Below are positions 2,855 to 16,788 of a DNA stretch of 64,000 bases, in pieces (within the stretch, counting starts at the first letter, position 1; each line of letters starts with the position of its first letter). The notes beneath the pieces were generated by a model, which saw only the letters and a program-made list of their open reading frames with translations, ran no database searches and was not told where the DNA came from. The translations under genes were made by a program, and so were the position numbers. Location of the stretch: the IMG/VR virus record IMGVR_UViG_3300025133_009608, positions 124,001-188,000 of that record, one strand, 5' to 3'.

Positions 2855-3538
2855 CTATAGATTATTTGGGCAATTTTCGTATGCGGATTTTACCATCTTC
2901 TTTACTGTCTTTGATATTCCTGGATTTACAATCATCGCCATCGGCAATAATTCATTTCGAATATAGTTTCGCATATACCGAGAATCAGAATTTGACGGAT
3001 CGATAATGTATGGAATATTTTTTCTTTCGCACCAAGAAACAAGATCTTCTTTTTCTGTCAAAAGAAATGGGCGAAGGAAGTTATCCCTTTGGTGCGGAAT
3101 CAGCCTTCCCCTGCCATGGAGAGATGTAAATACCCAGTTCTCAACTGAGTCACCCAAATGATGAGCAGTTATAATTGTAGTAATTGAACAAAAAAATTCA
3201 TTCAAACCCTCTCTGCCAATCCCCATTGATTCGTGCCTCTTGTTTGCATAGCTGGAAAAAAATCCGTACCGCTCATTTCTCCAGTATTCTTCTTGAGATT
3301 CTTCTTTTCTTTTCTCACGAGAAATGCGACCGATAACCAGTGGAATATCATTTTCTTTACAGTAAGCTCTAACAAGCCGCTCTGCGTCCTGAGCGTGTTC
3401 TGATCCATGATTGAAGTGAAGAGCTACCAAGTCTCTCTTGCCGCCGTTATAAGCGAAGCTAAGGGCCGCCATTGAGTCTGCCCCACCACTAACTGCAATG
3501 ACAACTTTATGCGGGATTTGTCCCAGTACTCGAATCAT
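2855..3538 (-). CDS. tilS: tRNA(Ile)-lysidine synthetase, catalytic PP-loop domain
   Basis: AVSGGADS PP-loop, HFNHG, TAHHLGD, RPFL, DPSN, RNYIRNELLP; start moved to MIRVLG (GAGG RBS). Confidence 0.9.
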   Translation of the reverse strand: MIRVLGQIPHKVVIAVSGGADSMAALSFAYNGGKRDLVALHFNHGSEHAQDAERLVRAYCKENDIPLVIGRISREKRKEESQEEYWRNERYGFFSSYANKRHESMGIGREGLNEFFCSITTIITAHHLGDSVENWVFTSLHGRGRLIPHQRDNFLRPFLLTEKEDLVSWCERKNIPYIIDPSNSDSRYMRNYIRNELLPMAMIVNPGISKTVKKMVKSAYENCPNNL

Positions 3539-5341: not shown

Positions 5342-6059
5342 TTTTAATAATCTCCCTCACACTGTTCAGTGTCTTTTTGTCATTAATGCCAACGACCTCT
5401 TGTCGGTTGCTAGTCAGAACCCCTCCGAGCCCTTCTGACTCTGCGGCGAGCTTTATTACGTCTGTTATATAATACTCATTATTTGGAGGATGAGGCTTAA
5501 GACCTGGGACTGCAATCGAAAACAGCCAAGCTGCATCAAATATATAAAATCCAGTATTAAACTCTGTAATAAGAAGCTGCTCCGGTGTTGCTTCCGATGC
5601 TTCAACTATTTCTCTTATAAGATTTTTGTCTCTTACAACCCTTCCATATCCAGAGCTCTTTGCTTCTTCTTTTTTAATATTGGAAGTAAGGATCGTGCAC
5701 AAGCCAGTATGTTTTTTATATAACATCTTTAGGGTATTTGCAGATATAAGAGGCGCATCGCCGGGCATTACCAAGACGACTCCGGAGTGTGGAATCTTAT
5801 CTCCAGCAAGCATAACCGCATGTCCGGTCCCAAGCTGCTGGTCTTGATCTATGAATTGGGTTTTATCGGGAAGGATAAATTTTATTAAATCCTTCTTATG
5901 GCCAACAATGACTACGGGCTCAAACCCAGCGCCACTAGCCGCCGCATATACCATCTCGATCATAGTTTTATCTCCAACCTCATGCAAGACCTTTGGAAGG
6001 CTTGACTGCATTCTAGTTCCCCTTCCTGCTGCCAGGATTAGAGCTACTGGTTTATTCAT
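5322..6059 (-). CDS. glmU: GlmU-type sugar-phosphate nucleotidyltransferase (N-terminal pyrophosphorylase domain only)
   Basis: LILAAGRGTRMQSSLPKVLH, QLGTGHAV, GDAPLI, GYGRVVR, EFNTGFY, EYYITD, GIND; no left-handed beta-helix domain. Confidence 0.9.
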   Translation of the reverse strand: MNKPVALILAAGRGTRMQSSLPKVLHEVGDKTMIEMVYAAASGAGFEPVVIVGHKKDLIKFILPDKTQFIDQDQQLGTGHAVMLAGDKIPHSGVVLVMPGDAPLISANTLKMLYKKHTGLCTILTSNIKKEEAKSSGYGRVVRDKNLIREIVEASEATPEQLLITEFNTGFYIFDAAWLFSIAVPGLKPHPPNNEYYITDVIKLAAESEGLGGVLTSNRQEVVGINDKKTLNSVREIIKNDRDRK

Positions 6060-6694
6060 GACTTTATGGTGTCCAATATATTAGAATAAGACTCTCCGAG
6101 AGTGGCGTATAGCCCCTGGTCCTCTAGGGCTATAGATAGGGGATCGGTTCCGGCAAACGGATCAGCACAGACATCGCCCTCGCACAATGTTCTATTTAAG
6201 ATATCTCTCCAGATCTCTGGGGGTTTCGCCGACTGTCCTTTTGGTTTTTTGTATTCGAAAATATTCGGAACTCCTTGGACGTAATTCTTTGGCTTCCCCT
6301 TTGATGCGTATAAAATATACTCGGTTTGATTCCTCCAATGGTATCCCATCCCCATTACAGACTTGTTCCAAACCAACATGTTTCTGAACTTCCATCCCGC
6401 CGCCTCAAGAGCTCCCCATGTTCTTCTTAGTCCGTCTCTATTGCAAAAGATATAAAGCCTTGCACCATCGTTTGATCTTTCAAAGGCGTTTTTTATAAAG
6501 CTTTCTATTCCAGCCCAATCAAGTCTCGTGTACATTTCGTCGACATTATCAATGTGATTAAATCGAGAAGTTCCGTTTTGATTATTAAAAGGATATGGAG
6601 GGTCTGTTATCCATACATCGATGTTTTTTTCTAGAGCAGAGAACCAATCGTCTATATCCAAAGAGGTCTTTGTTATTTTTGACATTACATTCAT
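6056..6694 (-). CDS. DNA amino-methyltransferase (N6-A/N4-C, beta class)
   Basis: TDPPY catalytic motif IV before DPFAGT SAM-binding motif I; KP motif. Confidence 0.9.
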   Translation of the reverse strand: MNVMSKITKTSLDIDDWFSALEKNIDVWITDPPYPFNNQNGTSRFNHIDNVDEMYTRLDWAGIESFIKNAFERSNDGARLYIFCNRDGLRRTWGALEAAGWKFRNMLVWNKSVMGMGYHWRNQTEYILYASKGKPKNYVQGVPNIFEYKKPKGQSAKPPEIWRDILNRTLCEGDVCADPFAGTDPLSIALEDQGLYATLGESYSNILDTIKS

Positions 6695-11570: not shown

Positions 11571-11596
11571 CTAATTAACCCCAAGTAATAAGAAAA

Positions 11597-11999
11597 GGTG
11601 GACCCGGCGGGAGTCGAACCCGCGTCCAGAAAGTTTTAAAAGTTAAGTCATTCACAGGTTTGTTTAGTTAAATTTCCAAACTAAAAAGGTAGCAACAAAT
11701 TTCCCGCTTCTATGTTGCCTCGAAATCCACCTGATACAAAAGGTATCCACCTATCTCTAAGTGAAGTAAGCTTGTGCCAGGGAACCATTTTTGATTTTTT
11801 ATTTTCGTAGGATCTCTACCTATTATTCAATTTTGGGTAATAAGGTTATTGAAAACCCCACCACTAAGCAGCTAAAGCTGCGGCGTAGAAGTGATTATTG
11901 TTATTTGCAATTATCGTTTTGATGAACCTTTTAGCTTGAATCATCATTAAAGCACCTGCACTCTATTTCTCTGCTCCCTGTCGAAACCGTTACGAGCCC
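11597..11999 (-). ncRNA. ssrA: tmRNA, tag peptide ANNNNHFYAAALAA
   Basis: 5' GGGCTCGTAACGGTTTCGAC; 3' GGACGCGGGTTCGACTCCCGCCGGGTCCACC; G3-U70 alanine identity pair; tag ORF 11864..11908 ending ALAA-stop. Confidence 0.95.
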
Positions 12000-12859: not shown

Positions 12860-13037
12860 TGAATGGCAAAGCGCTATCTTCCCCTAAAGGCACCAGCCCG
12901 ATGGAGGTGGCTACCTCTTTGATTTCCGTATAAGCCTCAAGGATAAGCTCTCGATAGTGTGTTGATACCCACCCATCATTACGGGGAGAGGTGGCCTCCA
13001 TTCTCCAGTTTTTAATCTTTTTTCTTATGTCTTTCAT
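12834..13037 (-). CDS. hypothetical protein
   Basis: GGAGG RBS. Confidence 0.7.
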   Translation of the reverse strand: MKDIRKKIKNWRMEATSPRNDGWVSTHYRELILEAYTEIKEVATSIGLVPLGEDSALPFIDNGGDDD

Positions 13038-13066
13038 GAGAAACCCTCCTTCTTAATAAGAAGTTA

Positions 13067-13918
13067 TTAGTAACTCCTGAAGTCTCTAATATCGAATTCT
13101 CGCCCTAGAGTTTTTCGAATACTGCCAAGCGCCCTGATCTCCATCTTTCTCGCCCACTCTCTAGAGATCTTTAAATCAGCTGCTAACTCCCGCAGTGTTT
13201 TTTTCTTATCCGAAAGGAATCGCTCTTTTACAATGTATCTCTCATCGTCGGGGAGTCGACTCAGAGCCGCCCCTATTGCTAGGGATAAGGCGACTTTTGA
13301 ACTCTCCTTCTCTACCTTGTCCTCCATTGTACCCTCATCAACCAGTAAGTCCTGCATTGTTGCGCCATTAGACTCATCTCCGATCGGAGTGCTAAGAGAT
13401 GTGTCATGTCCAGATAAGGCCTTTTGCATTTCCACAAGATCGGGGATCGAAACCCCCAGCAGATCGGCGATTCTAGTGGTTTTTTTATCCCCACACAATC
13501 CTTCTTTTTCCGCCTTTAGGCGTGCCTGGGTGATTCTAAAGAAAATGGCCCTAGAACTCCTGGTCGTTGCAAGGCGCACTATGCACTTTCGATCCATCAT
13601 GTGCCGCTTCATATAGGCGTTTGCCCACATCATTCCGTAGGACAAAAAGCTTGCGCCCTTATCTGGATCATAAGACTCCGCCGCCCGAAGCAAGCCAGCC
13701 ACCCCCTCTTGCATTAAATCTTCAAACGATGAGGCTACATTTTTTGAAGATAGCTTCCAAGCCTCCCTTGAAACTAATCTCATGTTTGAGAAAATTACAG
13801 CATCAAGAGCCTTTTTGTCTCCATCCGACTGCCAGATAGCTATAAGCTCCTTTTGCTTGTCATGAGGCATTGGGGGGTTTTCTGACAAAACCCTAGAAAG
13901 ATAAGATGAGTGTAGCAT
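13067..13918 (-). CDS. RNA polymerase sigma-70 family factor (RpoH/RpoD-like, regions 2-4)
   Basis: SNMRLV, DLMQEG..GLL.A...YDPDKGASFLSY, SLSTPIG, HTH TLRELA..LKISREWARKME; exact start uncertain. Confidence 0.92.
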   Translation of the reverse strand: MLHSSYLSRVLSENPPMPHDKQKELIAIWQSDGDKKALDAVIFSNMRLVSREAWKLSSKNVASSFEDLMQEGVAGLLRAAESYDPDKGASFLSYGMMWANAYMKRHMMDRKCIVRLATTRSSRAIFFRITQARLKAEKEGLCGDKKTTRIADLLGVSIPDLVEMQKALSGHDTSLSTPIGDESNGATMQDLLVDEGTMEDKVEKESSKVALSLAIGAALSRLPDDERYIVKERFLSDKKKTLRELAADLKISREWARKMEIRALGSIRKTLGREFDIRDFRSY

Positions 13919-13925
13919 GTTTTCT

Positions 13926-14147
13926 CTATTTAAATATGGAATTGTGGCGGGAGATGGAGACTGTAACTGTGTTATCAACCGATGCAATCACTTTTGTCCC
14001 AAAGGAATTAGCGGGGTAATTTTTCTCATAATCATCAATCCAAGATTTGATCTGATATCCAAAGCCTGTTATAGATGTAGTTGTTTTCTTTTTTGTCTTT
14101 TCAGTCCAATTTATCTTAAACATATCCATGATTGTCACGCGGGCCAA
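13926..14147 (-). CDS. hypothetical protein
   Basis: coupled ORF. Confidence 0.6.
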   Translation of the reverse strand: MARVTIMDMFKINWTEKTKKKTTTSITGFGYQIKSWIDDYEKNYPANSFGTKVIASVDNTVTVSISRHNSIFK

Positions 14148-14470
14148 GTATGGTAATGATTATCATCATCAATTATTGTTAATTCGTTAACCCTTGAAAC
14201 TCTCCACCCCAAGGAGCTCCAAGACTTTGCCCGAGGATAGTAAGCAGAAATAATATTTATTATCTTTTTCTCTCTAGAGTCAGAGTACGCGGCCTTACCG
14301 CTATTCTTATCTGCTGGCCAACAAGCTTCTCTCGCAAGAAGGTTAGAGGGAAATACTCCAGACCCAGACAGGGTGAATGAATATCCGATATGACTTATTG
14401 TGTCAGGACGAATGTGATCGCCCACCTCATCTGATTCATAGTATGGAATTAAAGCGTCATTCGTTCCCAT
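14135..14470 (-). CDS. hypothetical protein
   Basis: coupled ORF. Confidence 0.65.
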   Translation of the reverse strand: MGTNDALIPYYESDEVGDHIRPDTISHIGYSFTLSGSGVFPSNLLAREACWPADKNSGKAAYSDSREKKIINIISAYYPRAKSWSSLGWRVSRVNELTIIDDDNHYHTWPA

Positions 14471-14811
14471 TGTCCCTCCCAGTTCGTATATCGAACCCTC
14501 TTTACGCCATATCTTCTAAGATACTTTTGGCAGTATTTGCATGGCTTTGCCATTGAGATTTCTCCATTTTTTCTAAATCTAATAACATAAATCTCATCGG
14601 CGATTTGGCTCCCCATCTTTATCAAAAGATCCATCTCAGCGTGGAGATGGTAGCGAACCGTTCCGTCCCGATACCGTCGCATAAACTTTTTAGAACACCT
14701 CTCTGAGTTGACTCCAAAAGTAAGTGCGGCCCCACTCTTAAACCATGCCGCTATATGAAACGGCTGATTATTATTGAGGGCAATTTCTTGAGCTTTAATT
14801 GGATAATACAC
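14449..14811 (-). CDS. zinc-dependent cytidine/deoxycytidylate deaminase-fold protein
   Basis: HAEMDLL ... KPCKYCQ (HAE + PCxxC). Confidence 0.85.
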   Translation of the reverse strand: MYYPIKAQEIALNNNQPFHIAAWFKSGAALTFGVNSERCSKKFMRRYRDGTVRYHLHAEMDLLIKMGSQIADEIYVIRFRKNGEISMAKPCKYCQKYLRRYGVKRVRYTNWEGQWERMTL

Positions 14812-15347: not shown

Positions 15348-15760
15348 AATTTATATTCAAAATTTACAGTTGTACTGTTTTCTCTTAATTTTATAGCATT
15401 ATTTTTTAAATGAAACTTTTCTGCCATCACAGTTTGTGGGGACAGGGTTATTACTCTAAAATCTTTTTTCTTTTCTCGTGCCATATCTAATATAGATTCT
15501 ATGATTTTTCTACCGGCTCCACGCTGATGACTCCAAACTGTATAGGGAGTTATAATCTTCCCGTTGGGATCGGCCATTAGCTCCAAGTCTGAAACCGAAG
15601 CTGGAATATCATTTAAAAATGATATACAAATAAAAGCTCTAAACTCACCGTCTACTATGAGTCCATAAATTCTTCTACCACTACTTGTTCTGAATTCATT
15701 TGAAAGATTCGGCCTTACCGGATCATCCTCTGTTTTTATTTTAAAGATTTCTTTTAACAT
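15344..15760 (-). CDS. GNAT-like acetyltransferase-fold protein
   Basis: YTVWSHQRGAGRKII resembles motif A (Q/RxxGxG); start re-assigned to MLKEIF. Confidence 0.55.
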   Translation of the reverse strand: MLKEIFKIKTEDDPVRPNLSNEFRTSSGRRIYGLIVDGEFRAFICISFLNDIPASVSDLELMADPNGKIITPYTVWSHQRGAGRKIIESILDMAREKKKDFRVITLSPQTVMAEKFHLKNNAIKLRENSTTVNFEYKL

Positions 15761-15832
15761 TATTTTCCACAACTGTATATCAAAAAAGGAGAGAAATTTA
15801 GCACTTCTATTTTCTCTGCTTGTGATCACCAA

Positions 15833-16448
15833 GCCTTTTGGGCCTGTCCCCTTTTCGGGTTAGGTGTAAGCACACCGGAAAGTAAAAACCGTTCACAAGC
15901 TTTCTCCCTGTTCTCGGCCTGTAAAGACCACGGAACAGCACGCCCTACTATCGTCATAATATTCTGCGTTTCTTCGAGTAAGCTGTACACTTCACCTCTT
16001 AGTTGCGCGTTATGTTTTTAACCCTTGGTAGGCCATCCACATAACCCCTTTCGGGACGACAGACTTGCTTCCAAATCCGCCAGAGAGACTTCTATTACCG
16101 ACAGTTAGATTCTAGAGAGGTTTAGCTCCCATTTCCAAGACTTTGTTTCTTGGTTATACCCTTATCCCGCTTCCACGATGAACCTACAAGTCCGTGGATA
16201 CTCTCGGCAGTACTCCTTCAGTGGTATGAAGGCCCATGCGTCGAATCACTAGATGATATTCAAAGCTACCACGCTTCTTTACTCATCCCCTCTCTTAGCT
16301 GGGCGGCAGTGGAGCATAAGAATGCTCCTTTCCCAATCGAGGTTTTCTCTATTGCCTTGGCTTTCGCCGTTGCACTCAAAGATCGGTAATTCCATTTGAG
16401 TTTAAAGACCCGAGAACTGGGGTCTTTATAGTGATGTAAAAGATCAGA
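15833..16448 (-). ncRNA. large (~615 nt) structured ncRNA candidate, GOLLD/ROOL size class
   Basis: no credible ORF; many hairpins (16404-16427, 16359-16368 GAAA loop, 16311-16328, 16135-16153, 16046-16055 GAAA loop, 15908-15938); TATAAT at 16455-16460; adjacent to tRNA-Ser. Family not verified. Confidence 0.7.
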
Positions 16449-16500
16449 AGATATATTATAATACAATTATTACAAATATAATTTAATTTTTTCTAATAAA

Positions 16501-16586
16501 TGGCGGAAGGCTAGGGACTCGAACCCTAAACTGCTTTCACAGCGACGGATTTCAAATCCGCGTCCTAGCCAATTCGGATGCCTTCC
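16501..16586 (-). tRNA. trnS: tRNA-Ser(UGA)
   Basis: GCGGA-TTTGAAA-TCCGT anticodon arm, long variable arm, G73, CCA. Confidence 0.93.
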
Positions 16587-16593
16587 TTTGTGG

Positions 16594-16788
16594 TTAATTC
16601 TCAATAGACCTACTTGATTCATCTTCATTGTCATCTGGGTCGCTGGGTGCGCTCAGCGCAACATAAATTACTTCATTTGTAATGACAGACTCTGGGTCAT
16701 CCCTAAGTGAGTCTAGGGCTTTTTGAAAGGCCTCATCTACAGACGAACCTCTTCCTTTTATTGTGATATTAAACTCATAATTTTTCAC
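16594..16788 (-). CDS. hypothetical protein
   Basis: GTG start; GGAAGG upstream. Confidence 0.65.
   Translation of the reverse strand: MKNYEFNITIKGRGSSVDEAFQKALDSLRDDPESVITNEVIYVALSAPSDPDDNEDESSRSIEN

Follow-up and report, generated by a model that had tools for sequence, protein, structure and literature searches.

The window (the whole stretch of 64,000 nucleotides analysed here) spans positions 124,001-188,000 of a virus record of 316,664 bp from a marine metagenome, with a CheckV completeness of 94% and the standard genetic code. For one protein of this record, weak and partial matches (15-20% of the protein length, about 30-38% identity) were obtained in jumbo phages of Erwinia, Pseudomonas (Lu11) and Ralstonia, as well as in uncultured phage records with a size of about 640 kb. 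The locus is made up of small genes, including seven tRNA genes, a phage tmRNA and a gene of the sigma-70 family, and among them lies the gene of a large, ornate RNA, present in one copy in the source genome (Table 1). The tRNA-Ser gene precedes it with a gap of 55 nt, the tmRNA is found 4 kb away in the same minus-strand block as the seven tRNA genes, and an ORF of 138 aa follows the RNA gene on the same strand. No close relatives of the 306-aa sigma-70-family protein were detected in IMG/VR by a pattern scan. The 120-aa ORF at 14449-14811 (minus strand) just reached the cut-off (25.1 bits, with 25 required) for the cytidine/deoxycytidylate deaminase zinc-binding domain, so that this match is borderline.

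Table 1. Features of the ornate RNA gene and of its neighbourhood, in window coordinates.
Feature	Position	Strand	Evidence and remarks
Phage tmRNA	11596-11999	-	Rfam, 96.9 bits; tag peptide ANNNNHFYAAALAA
Sigma-70-family protein, 306 aa, regions 2 and 4	13067-13987	-	Phage-encoded
tRNA-Ser(UGA)	16501-16586	-	ARAGORN and Rfam tRNA; same strand, upstream of the ornate RNA
TATAAT, -10-like hexamer	16455-16460	-	Sequence; no good -35 in the window copy
Whole RNA gene, about 664 nt	15782-16445	-	Begins with the conserved 5' motif and ends with the terminator U-tract
Conserved 5' motif GAUCUUUU, family consensus G(A/U)UCUUUnAnA	16438-16445	-	Columns at least 90% conserved; 5' edge of the alignment
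5' hairpin GACCC/GGGUC, conserved loop nnGUUCUC	16407-16424	-	98% canonical, no covariation
Helix CUCAAAUGG/UCUUUGAGUG	16373-16400	-	8 of 8 pairs with compensatory double changes
Three-helix domain with internal pseudoknot	16289-16342	-	Helices 98-100% canonical, 4-5 covarying pairs each
Two hairpins with complementary loops GUGGUA (16272-16267) and UACCAC (16226-16221), kissing-loop pair	16215-16277	-	
Hairpin with the most conserved stretch, GGAYUUGUARRUUCAUCG	16172-16198	-	Invariant in 43 copies
Long-range helix, CUUGGAA (16139-16133) with loop UACCAAG (16030-16024)	16024-16139	-	110 nt apart; 99% canonical, 2 double changes
3' core domain closed by ACUGUCG/CGAUAGU	15945-16107	-	Model R1, 174 bits
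Hairpin CUGUUC...GAACAG, then invariant GGGAG	15904-15942	-	96% canonical; 6 covarying outer pairs; AACAGGGAG invariant
3' domain closed by GCUUGUG/CACAAGC	15818-15900	-	Closing helix 96% canonical, 4 covarying pairs
Intrinsic terminator	15782-15817	-	Stem AGAGAAA/UUUCUCU with conserved loop AUAGAAGUGCUAAA; CC and six U follow

In the family the conservation opens at G(A/U)UCUUU and closes after the terminator, the flanks being unrelated between loci, and the nhmmer and covariance-model matches span the full length of the RNA wherever the contig permits. Since the conservation runs from 16445 to the terminator at 15782, the RNA is about 664 nt long. An earlier sequence-only reading had placed the element at 15833-16448; the RNA starts at the 5' motif at 16445, and its 3' end had to be corrected by about 50 nt further 3', and the TATAAT it had pointed out at 16455-16460 was confirmed, on the minus strand. 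The terminator, composed of a hairpin (15817-15790) and a U-tract (15787-15782), is present in every homologue: the letters of the stem differ, the pairing is kept, and a C-rich stretch and the U-tract come next. At the site equivalent to the TATAAT hexamer most homologues show a clear promoter-like arrangement (TTGAAC/TTGTAC, 17 nt, then a TATAAT-like box), and some of them also have a short hairpin in a leader. In L061 and L058/L077 the 5' motif begins 6-8 nt past the CCA end of a tRNA, thus the RNA must be co-transcribed with the tRNA there. In the window copy the -10 hexamer is not accompanied by a convincing -35 and the tRNA-Ser ends 55 nt upstream, therefore read-through from the tRNA is plausible. 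The ornate RNA is a discrete transcription unit, either promoter-driven or fused directly behind a tRNA, with its own terminator. The promoters of the homologues, with their TTGAAC/TTGTAC -35 box, are sigma-70-like, and the phage encodes a sigma-70-family protein.

More than 80 homologues, full-length or truncated by the contig, were collected at 60-82% identity from IMG/VR, JGI metagenomes and three MAG contigs. The first scan used a pattern derived from the most conserved block (an 18-mer) and returned 6 IMG/VR loci and 64 JGI metagenome loci, all of which align across the whole element where the contig permits, except L016, a chance match that was dropped. A second, independent pattern yielded 12 further IMG/VR contigs and the three MAG contigs. 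Another chance match was L082, a Kiritimatiellia MAG locus returned by the genome scan. The 43 distinct full-length copies show pairwise identities of 60-100% (mean 71%), the window copy being at most 82% identical to any other.

All members of the RNA family lie in viral or viral-like contigs, many of them of jumbo phages, typically within tRNA islands. The IMG/VR contigs carrying the RNA number 19, and the carriers range from 15-kb fragments up to complete, terminally redundant genomes of 204 kb and 293 kb. No 929-aa protein is common to the carriers, therefore these are not close relatives. The samples are of marine, hydrothermal-vent and lake origin. Same-strand tRNAs are situated a few kb or less away in most loci, and only 6-60 nt upstream in nine of them. 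In the 50,697 GenBank phage records, blastn at E<=1e-5 and at E<=10 gave nothing other than chance matches of 20-28 nt, and no cultured phage carrying the RNA was found by this search. The first pattern was absent from 185,579 species genomes, so the RNA is not a cellular gene. Three contigs assigned to MAGs, L083 (PBIO01000025.1), L084 (NHDW01000006.1, 306 kb) and L085 (DQKQ01000101.1), carry the RNA together with tRNAs; their MAG labels are Halobacteriovorax, Methylococcaceae TMED69 and Flavobacteriales. Since the Halobacteriovorax-labelled contig equals an IMG/VR viral contig both in size (101,404 bp) and in its RNA, these contigs are most likely phage DNA that was mis-binned into bacterial MAGs.

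Comparison of the gene neighbourhoods did not bring out any protein partner conserved across the carriers. A gene for an FKBP-type peptidyl-prolyl isomerase stands directly downstream of the RNA in nine loci (L078, at 1918-2508, L036, L037, L047, L061, L062, L070, L080 and L084). The isomerase was rejected as an obligate partner; its gene is absent from the source genome and from the complete 204-kb carrier. Relatives of a downstream 162-aa ORF were found in nine loci, none of which carries the RNA. Some further peculiarities of single loci were observed. One 33-kb metagenome contig (L079) bears two copies of the RNA on the same strand, at 5385-6068 and 12997-13698, which are 76% identical. 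In L034 and L055 a tRNA whose identity ARAGORN leaves undetermined lies about 2.6 kb upstream of the RNA; its 'anticodon' has only two bases (ta), and it is possibly an unusual or broken tRNA. A 29-nt hairpin-like repeat (CGCAGGGAGGCAYGGGNTNACAGRTGCCT) occurs near the RNA gene in eight related loci (L047, L032, L040, L043, L044, L053, L088 and L097) and is absent from the window; L047 holds three copies of it (1401-1429, 1674-1702 and 3257-3285).

The element was described by the sequence-only reading as richer in GC than its surroundings and poor in ORFs, and both observations held: the GC content is 0.46-0.48 within the element versus 0.30-0.38 in the flanks, and the longest ORFs are no longer than those in shuffled sequence. 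The strands and frames of the ORFs are inconsistent among the homologues and only 153 of the 950 gap runs in the homologue alignment are divisible by 3. Thus a coding function could be excluded. The folding energy of the minus strand is -207 kcal/mol, with z = -4.1 relative to dinucleotide shuffles; for the plus strand z = -2.4 was obtained.

A conserved and very elaborate RNA structure on the minus strand is demonstrated by covariation among 43-59 distinct homologues. The consensus fold calculated by RNAalifold from the 43 distinct full-length copies contains 131 pairs, of which 83 show compensatory double changes, and beyond this fold at least five long-range helices (pseudoknots or kissing loops) were found, 96-100% canonical and with double changes. 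A naive all-against-all column covariance gave 13,932 'pairs' and was dominated by phylogenetic signal, therefore it was replaced by a stacked-helix scan with register-shift controls. The covariance model R1, built for the 163-nt core, recovered 64 copies with 105-192 bits, many of them outside the training set. In the core, represented by 59 distinct sequences, the paired cells amounted to 96.9%, against 84.3% when the partners were shuffled and 33-45% when the register was slid; double changes were present in 30 of the 43 pairs, and none of the 500 shuffles matched any observed measure. It has to be noted that the shuffle and slide test covers only the model-made alignment of the core and not the full alignment of 724 columns.

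The long-range contacts are distributed as follows. In the three-helix domain the hairpin loop UUCUUA (16322-16317) forms a pseudoknot with UAAGAG (16297-16292), 20 nt downstream; this pairing is 98% canonical with 3 double changes, the register-shift controls giving 0.38-0.78. The kissing-loop pair occurs in the variants GUGGUA/UACCAC, GUGGAA/UUCCGC and GUGACA/UGUCAC; its pairs are canonical in 96% of cases and show 3 double changes (0.18-0.66 in the shift controls). Within the most conserved stretch, UAGGUUC (16186-16180) pairs with GAAUCUA at 16112-16106 (GAAYYUA in the family), and the RR/YY combinations of this pairing are compatible in all of 79 copies, AA being found solely with UU. The invariance of this stretch in the 43 copies is biased, the same motif having been used to fetch them; it is readable in 10 of 16 independently fetched loci and varies there at 1-2 positions. 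The double changes of the CUUGGAA/UACCAAG helix turn CUUGG/CCAAG into CAUGG/CCAUG, and just 5' of this helix, around 16140-16160, there is a variable insertion of 0 to about 30 nt. An internal GUGCUU (15873-15868) of the 3' domain pairs with the terminator loop at 15806-15801 (99.6% canonical, 3 double changes). The 3' core domain contains the hairpin GUCCC-GAAA-GGGG (16057-16045) and a hairpin with the palindromic loop UGUACA (15989-15984); these two elements, the latter as a loop containing UGUACA, and AACAGGGAG are invariant regardless of the pattern used for fetching. The pairings of the 5' UCUUU motif and of the 5' hairpin loop (GGGAG/CGGGA, CUCUC/GGGAG) remain unproven since both sides hardly vary; for the loop of the 5' hairpin, CGGGA at 16165-16169 is a possible partner. 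Altogether, the element is conserved solely as an RNA structure. This comprises about 30 helices, five or more long-range contacts (pseudoknots or kissing loops), and GNRA and palindromic loops that are invariant.

The proposal made from the window sequence, a large ornate non-coding RNA beside a tRNA, is thus upheld by the covariation, and the phage and tRNA-island context holds throughout the family. The nine stems listed at that time are all present in the sequence and most of them in the family consensus. The pairs of ACTCAAA/TTTGAGT and TTATGT/ACATAA covary (8 of 8 and 6 of 7, respectively), GGAGCAT/ATGCTCC shows partial covariation, CCACG/CGTGG is 99% canonical, almost no variation is seen in CCC-GAAA-GGG and CTGTTC/GAACAG, AAAGACCC/GGGTCTTT is kept in the family as GACCC/GGGUC, and GGC-GAAA-GCC sits at the tip, which is variable, of a helix that covaries. 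The CCAAGA/TCTTGG stem is present in the window copy; family-wide, CUUGGAA pairs with the distal loop UACCAAG instead or additionally.

The RNA is well represented in marine metatranscriptomes, dozens of which contain it at high depth. In each of two of these, positions 15836-16420 are covered exactly by 105-174 short, high-depth contigs of 80-95% identity, and a metagenome from a hydrothermal vent covers the same region with 69 contigs; the flanking ORFs had zero contig coverage in those data. Over 151 nt, one contig of an RNA library is identical to the window copy. Of the 31-mers of one relative, 17-31% are contained in each of at least 20 metatranscriptome runs, which come from at least 12 studies and include runs of only 29-76 million letters. 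The coverage is likely to reflect a highly expressed RNA. This inference rests on assembled contigs of mixed relatives, RNA libraries may hold DNA, and the blank flanks may arise because the flanks are not conserved.

When the 4227 families of Rfam 15 were compared by cmscan with the whole window at the gathering scores and with the region (15700-16600, 901 nt) at E<=10, nothing was found on the RNA; the unmatched families include OLE, raiA, HEARO, RNase P, tmRNA, group I and II introns and rRNA. The scan itself works, since the tmRNA and the tRNAs elsewhere in the window were recovered. In these scans and in those of 16 homologous loci at E<=10 only tRNAs, the tmRNA and chance matches were seen. 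The GOLLD model RF02032 (gathering score 150 bits) and the ROOL model RF03087 (99.1 bits) had no match at E<=10 in the region, in the 316,664-bp genome or in the 16 loci. In case of ROOL there was no positive control, because the control genomes contain no ROOL. Of the two possibilities left by the sequence-only reading, a divergent GOLLD or ROOL remains unsupported by any Rfam 15 model at this threshold, and a new class fits. No description of the RNA family was found in the literature searched, and fragments of it may sit in earlier surveys of viromes or metatranscriptomes, among candidate motifs without a name. Apart from GOLLD and ROOL, no giant ornate RNA carried by phages has been known up to now.

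ROOL and GOLLD are RNAs of phages and prophages located near tRNA islands (PMC12286853). The ROOL model has 574 positions, the env-120 RNA is 659 nt long, and ROOL is as abundant as 16S rRNA; GOLLD exceeds 800 nt, and env-38 lies downstream of a tRNA-Met in a marine sample (PMC12286853). Both form nanocages without protein, held together by A-minor contacts, conserved palindromic loops and kissing loops, the last of which were first recognized from their covariation, and each contains a poorly conserved linker (PMC12286853). Cryo-EM in 2025 reportedly revealed both as protein-free nanocages. The RNA described here resembles ROOL in its length (about 664 nt against about 580-660 nt), its ornate multi-helix fold with covarying pseudoknots, its phage or prophage location near tRNA islands, its great abundance, its kissing and self-complementary loops and its poorly conserved insertion or linker. 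However, ROOL occurs in rumen and Lactobacillales phages, whereas the new RNA comes from marine, hydrothermal-vent and lake, largely jumbo, phages; ROOL forms an RNA-only octameric nanocage, whereas oligomerisation of the new RNA is only inferred. With GOLLD it shares the large ornate fold encoded by phages, the marine and lake metagenomes, the frequent position downstream of or joined to a tRNA, and the invariant GNRA loops. GOLLD has more than 800 nt and is conserved in its 3' half and variable in its 5' half; in contrast, the new RNA has about 664 nt, and invariant blocks and covarying helices are found in both halves. OLE and raiA are similarly large, highly structured and abundant, with long invariant stretches, but they are not phage-borne, being chromosomal genes of Firmicutes and Actinobacteria, and the new RNA has no Rfam match. 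The tRNA cluster of phage T4 encodes the stable RNAs species 1 and 2 (about 120-140 nt), whose function is unknown. These too are non-tRNA stable RNAs co-transcribed with phage tRNAs and excised from a precursor; they are, however, far shorter, and no similarity was detected in the GenBank phages.

These data show that the locus is the gene of a discrete, conserved and highly structured non-coding RNA of about 664 nt, which is specific to phages and linked to tRNAs. On this basis we suggest that it is a stable RNA which founds a new class of ornate phage RNAs, associates with itself and acts on tRNA or translation. The mechanism is inferred, and we regard the proposal as a whole as about as likely as not. 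In this model the RNA would be made in large amounts in the infected cell, would be released by a cut at the conserved G(A/U)UCUUU motif in those loci in which it follows a tRNA or a leader, and would fold into a compact architecture independently of protein. Its copies may then join through loop-loop contacts into a homo-oligomeric particle, like ROOL and GOLLD, the candidate contacts being GUGGUA/UACCAC, a loop pair that covaries, and UGUACA, a self-complementary loop that is invariant. The latter gives no covariation signal because it never varies. The particle is predicted to act in trans on tRNA or on the translation machinery to the benefit of the phage. It is possible that all of the covarying loop-loop pairs are intramolecular; oligomerisation data are not available.

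Several other explanations have to be weighed against this model. The RNA could be a ROOL or GOLLD that has diverged very far: it would have its ancestry and fold in common with one of the two, but its sequence would have drifted beyond the reach of the Rfam models. The length close to that of ROOL env-120, the phage and tRNA-island context, the abundance, the pseudoknots and the linker-like insertion are in line with this; however, neither RF03087 nor RF02032 was matched anywhere in the 317-kb genome or in the 16 loci even at E<=10 (with the reservation made for ROOL), and the hallmark of GOLLD, a conserved 3' and a variable 5' half, is missing, the conservation extending along the whole length. 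Since there is no model match and the layout of GOLLD is absent, the RNA is best placed in a new class of the same kind and in neither of the two families, and the divergent-homologue explanation appears very unlikely. Deep homology with ROOL or GOLLD is still possible in the absence of structures. Alternatively, the RNA might be a monomeric scaffold or decoy without RNA-only multimers, its target being a macromolecule of the host or the phage; the ribosome, a translation factor, a chaperone or a defence nuclease directed against tRNAs would be candidates. Long invariant stretches, single-stranded or in tertiary pairing, such as the most conserved stretch and AACAGGGAG, are typical of binding sites; tRNAs, the tmRNA 4 kb away and, in nine loci, FKBP-type isomerases are found nearby, and GOLLD is reported to pull down ribosomes. 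Against this, no partner gene is conserved across the carriers, and an intramolecular pseudoknot accounts for the most conserved stretch. We consider this explanation unlikely.

A large ribozyme, which would for example process the adjacent tRNA transcripts or cleave itself from them, is also very unlikely. The RNA begins 6-8 nt past the tRNA CCA in three loci, where a cut is needed if the two are to separate, and its size, invariant core nucleotides and pseudoknots recall RNase P and the group I and II introns. However, no ribozyme family of Rfam matches, most copies have their own promoter without an upstream tRNA, and the host RNases P, Z and E suffice for such tRNA-RNA cuts. Finally, it can practically be ruled out that the element is a small protein gene, an intron, a fragment of an rRNA or a leader that acts in cis on the downstream gene. 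Short ORFs do overlap the region and the 138-aa ORF comes next on the same strand, but a conserved terminator stands before the downstream genes, which differ between loci, and the ORFs match those of shuffled sequence with neither frame nor strand conserved. There are no exons since the flanks share no similarity, and no intron or rRNA model matches.

In its size, its context and its abundance the new RNA class is thus similar to ROOL and GOLLD, and it is detectably a member of neither. It exposes a blind spot of the Rfam-based annotation of viral metagenomes, and its reach over marine, hydrothermal-vent and lake samples suggests ecological weight. The 664-nt sequence, the alignment of about 60 distinct copies, the covariance model and the candidate contact loops enable immediate in vitro work on structure and oligomerisation. 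A bolder reading is conceivable, though less likely than not, in which the RNA would be a self-assembling nanostructure made of RNA only, the third class of its kind and independent of the others, or a new large ribozyme, made in bulk by abundant oceanic jumbo phages in order to manipulate tRNAs or ribosomes; if this were true, it would be among the most abundant uncharacterised structured RNAs in the sea. The new RNA provides an independent system for probing what the large ornate phage RNAs do. A third, unrelated-looking class with the same tRNA-island habit and high expression would reveal the traits common to RNAs of this kind, namely the linkage to tRNAs, the loop-loop contacts and the variable linker.
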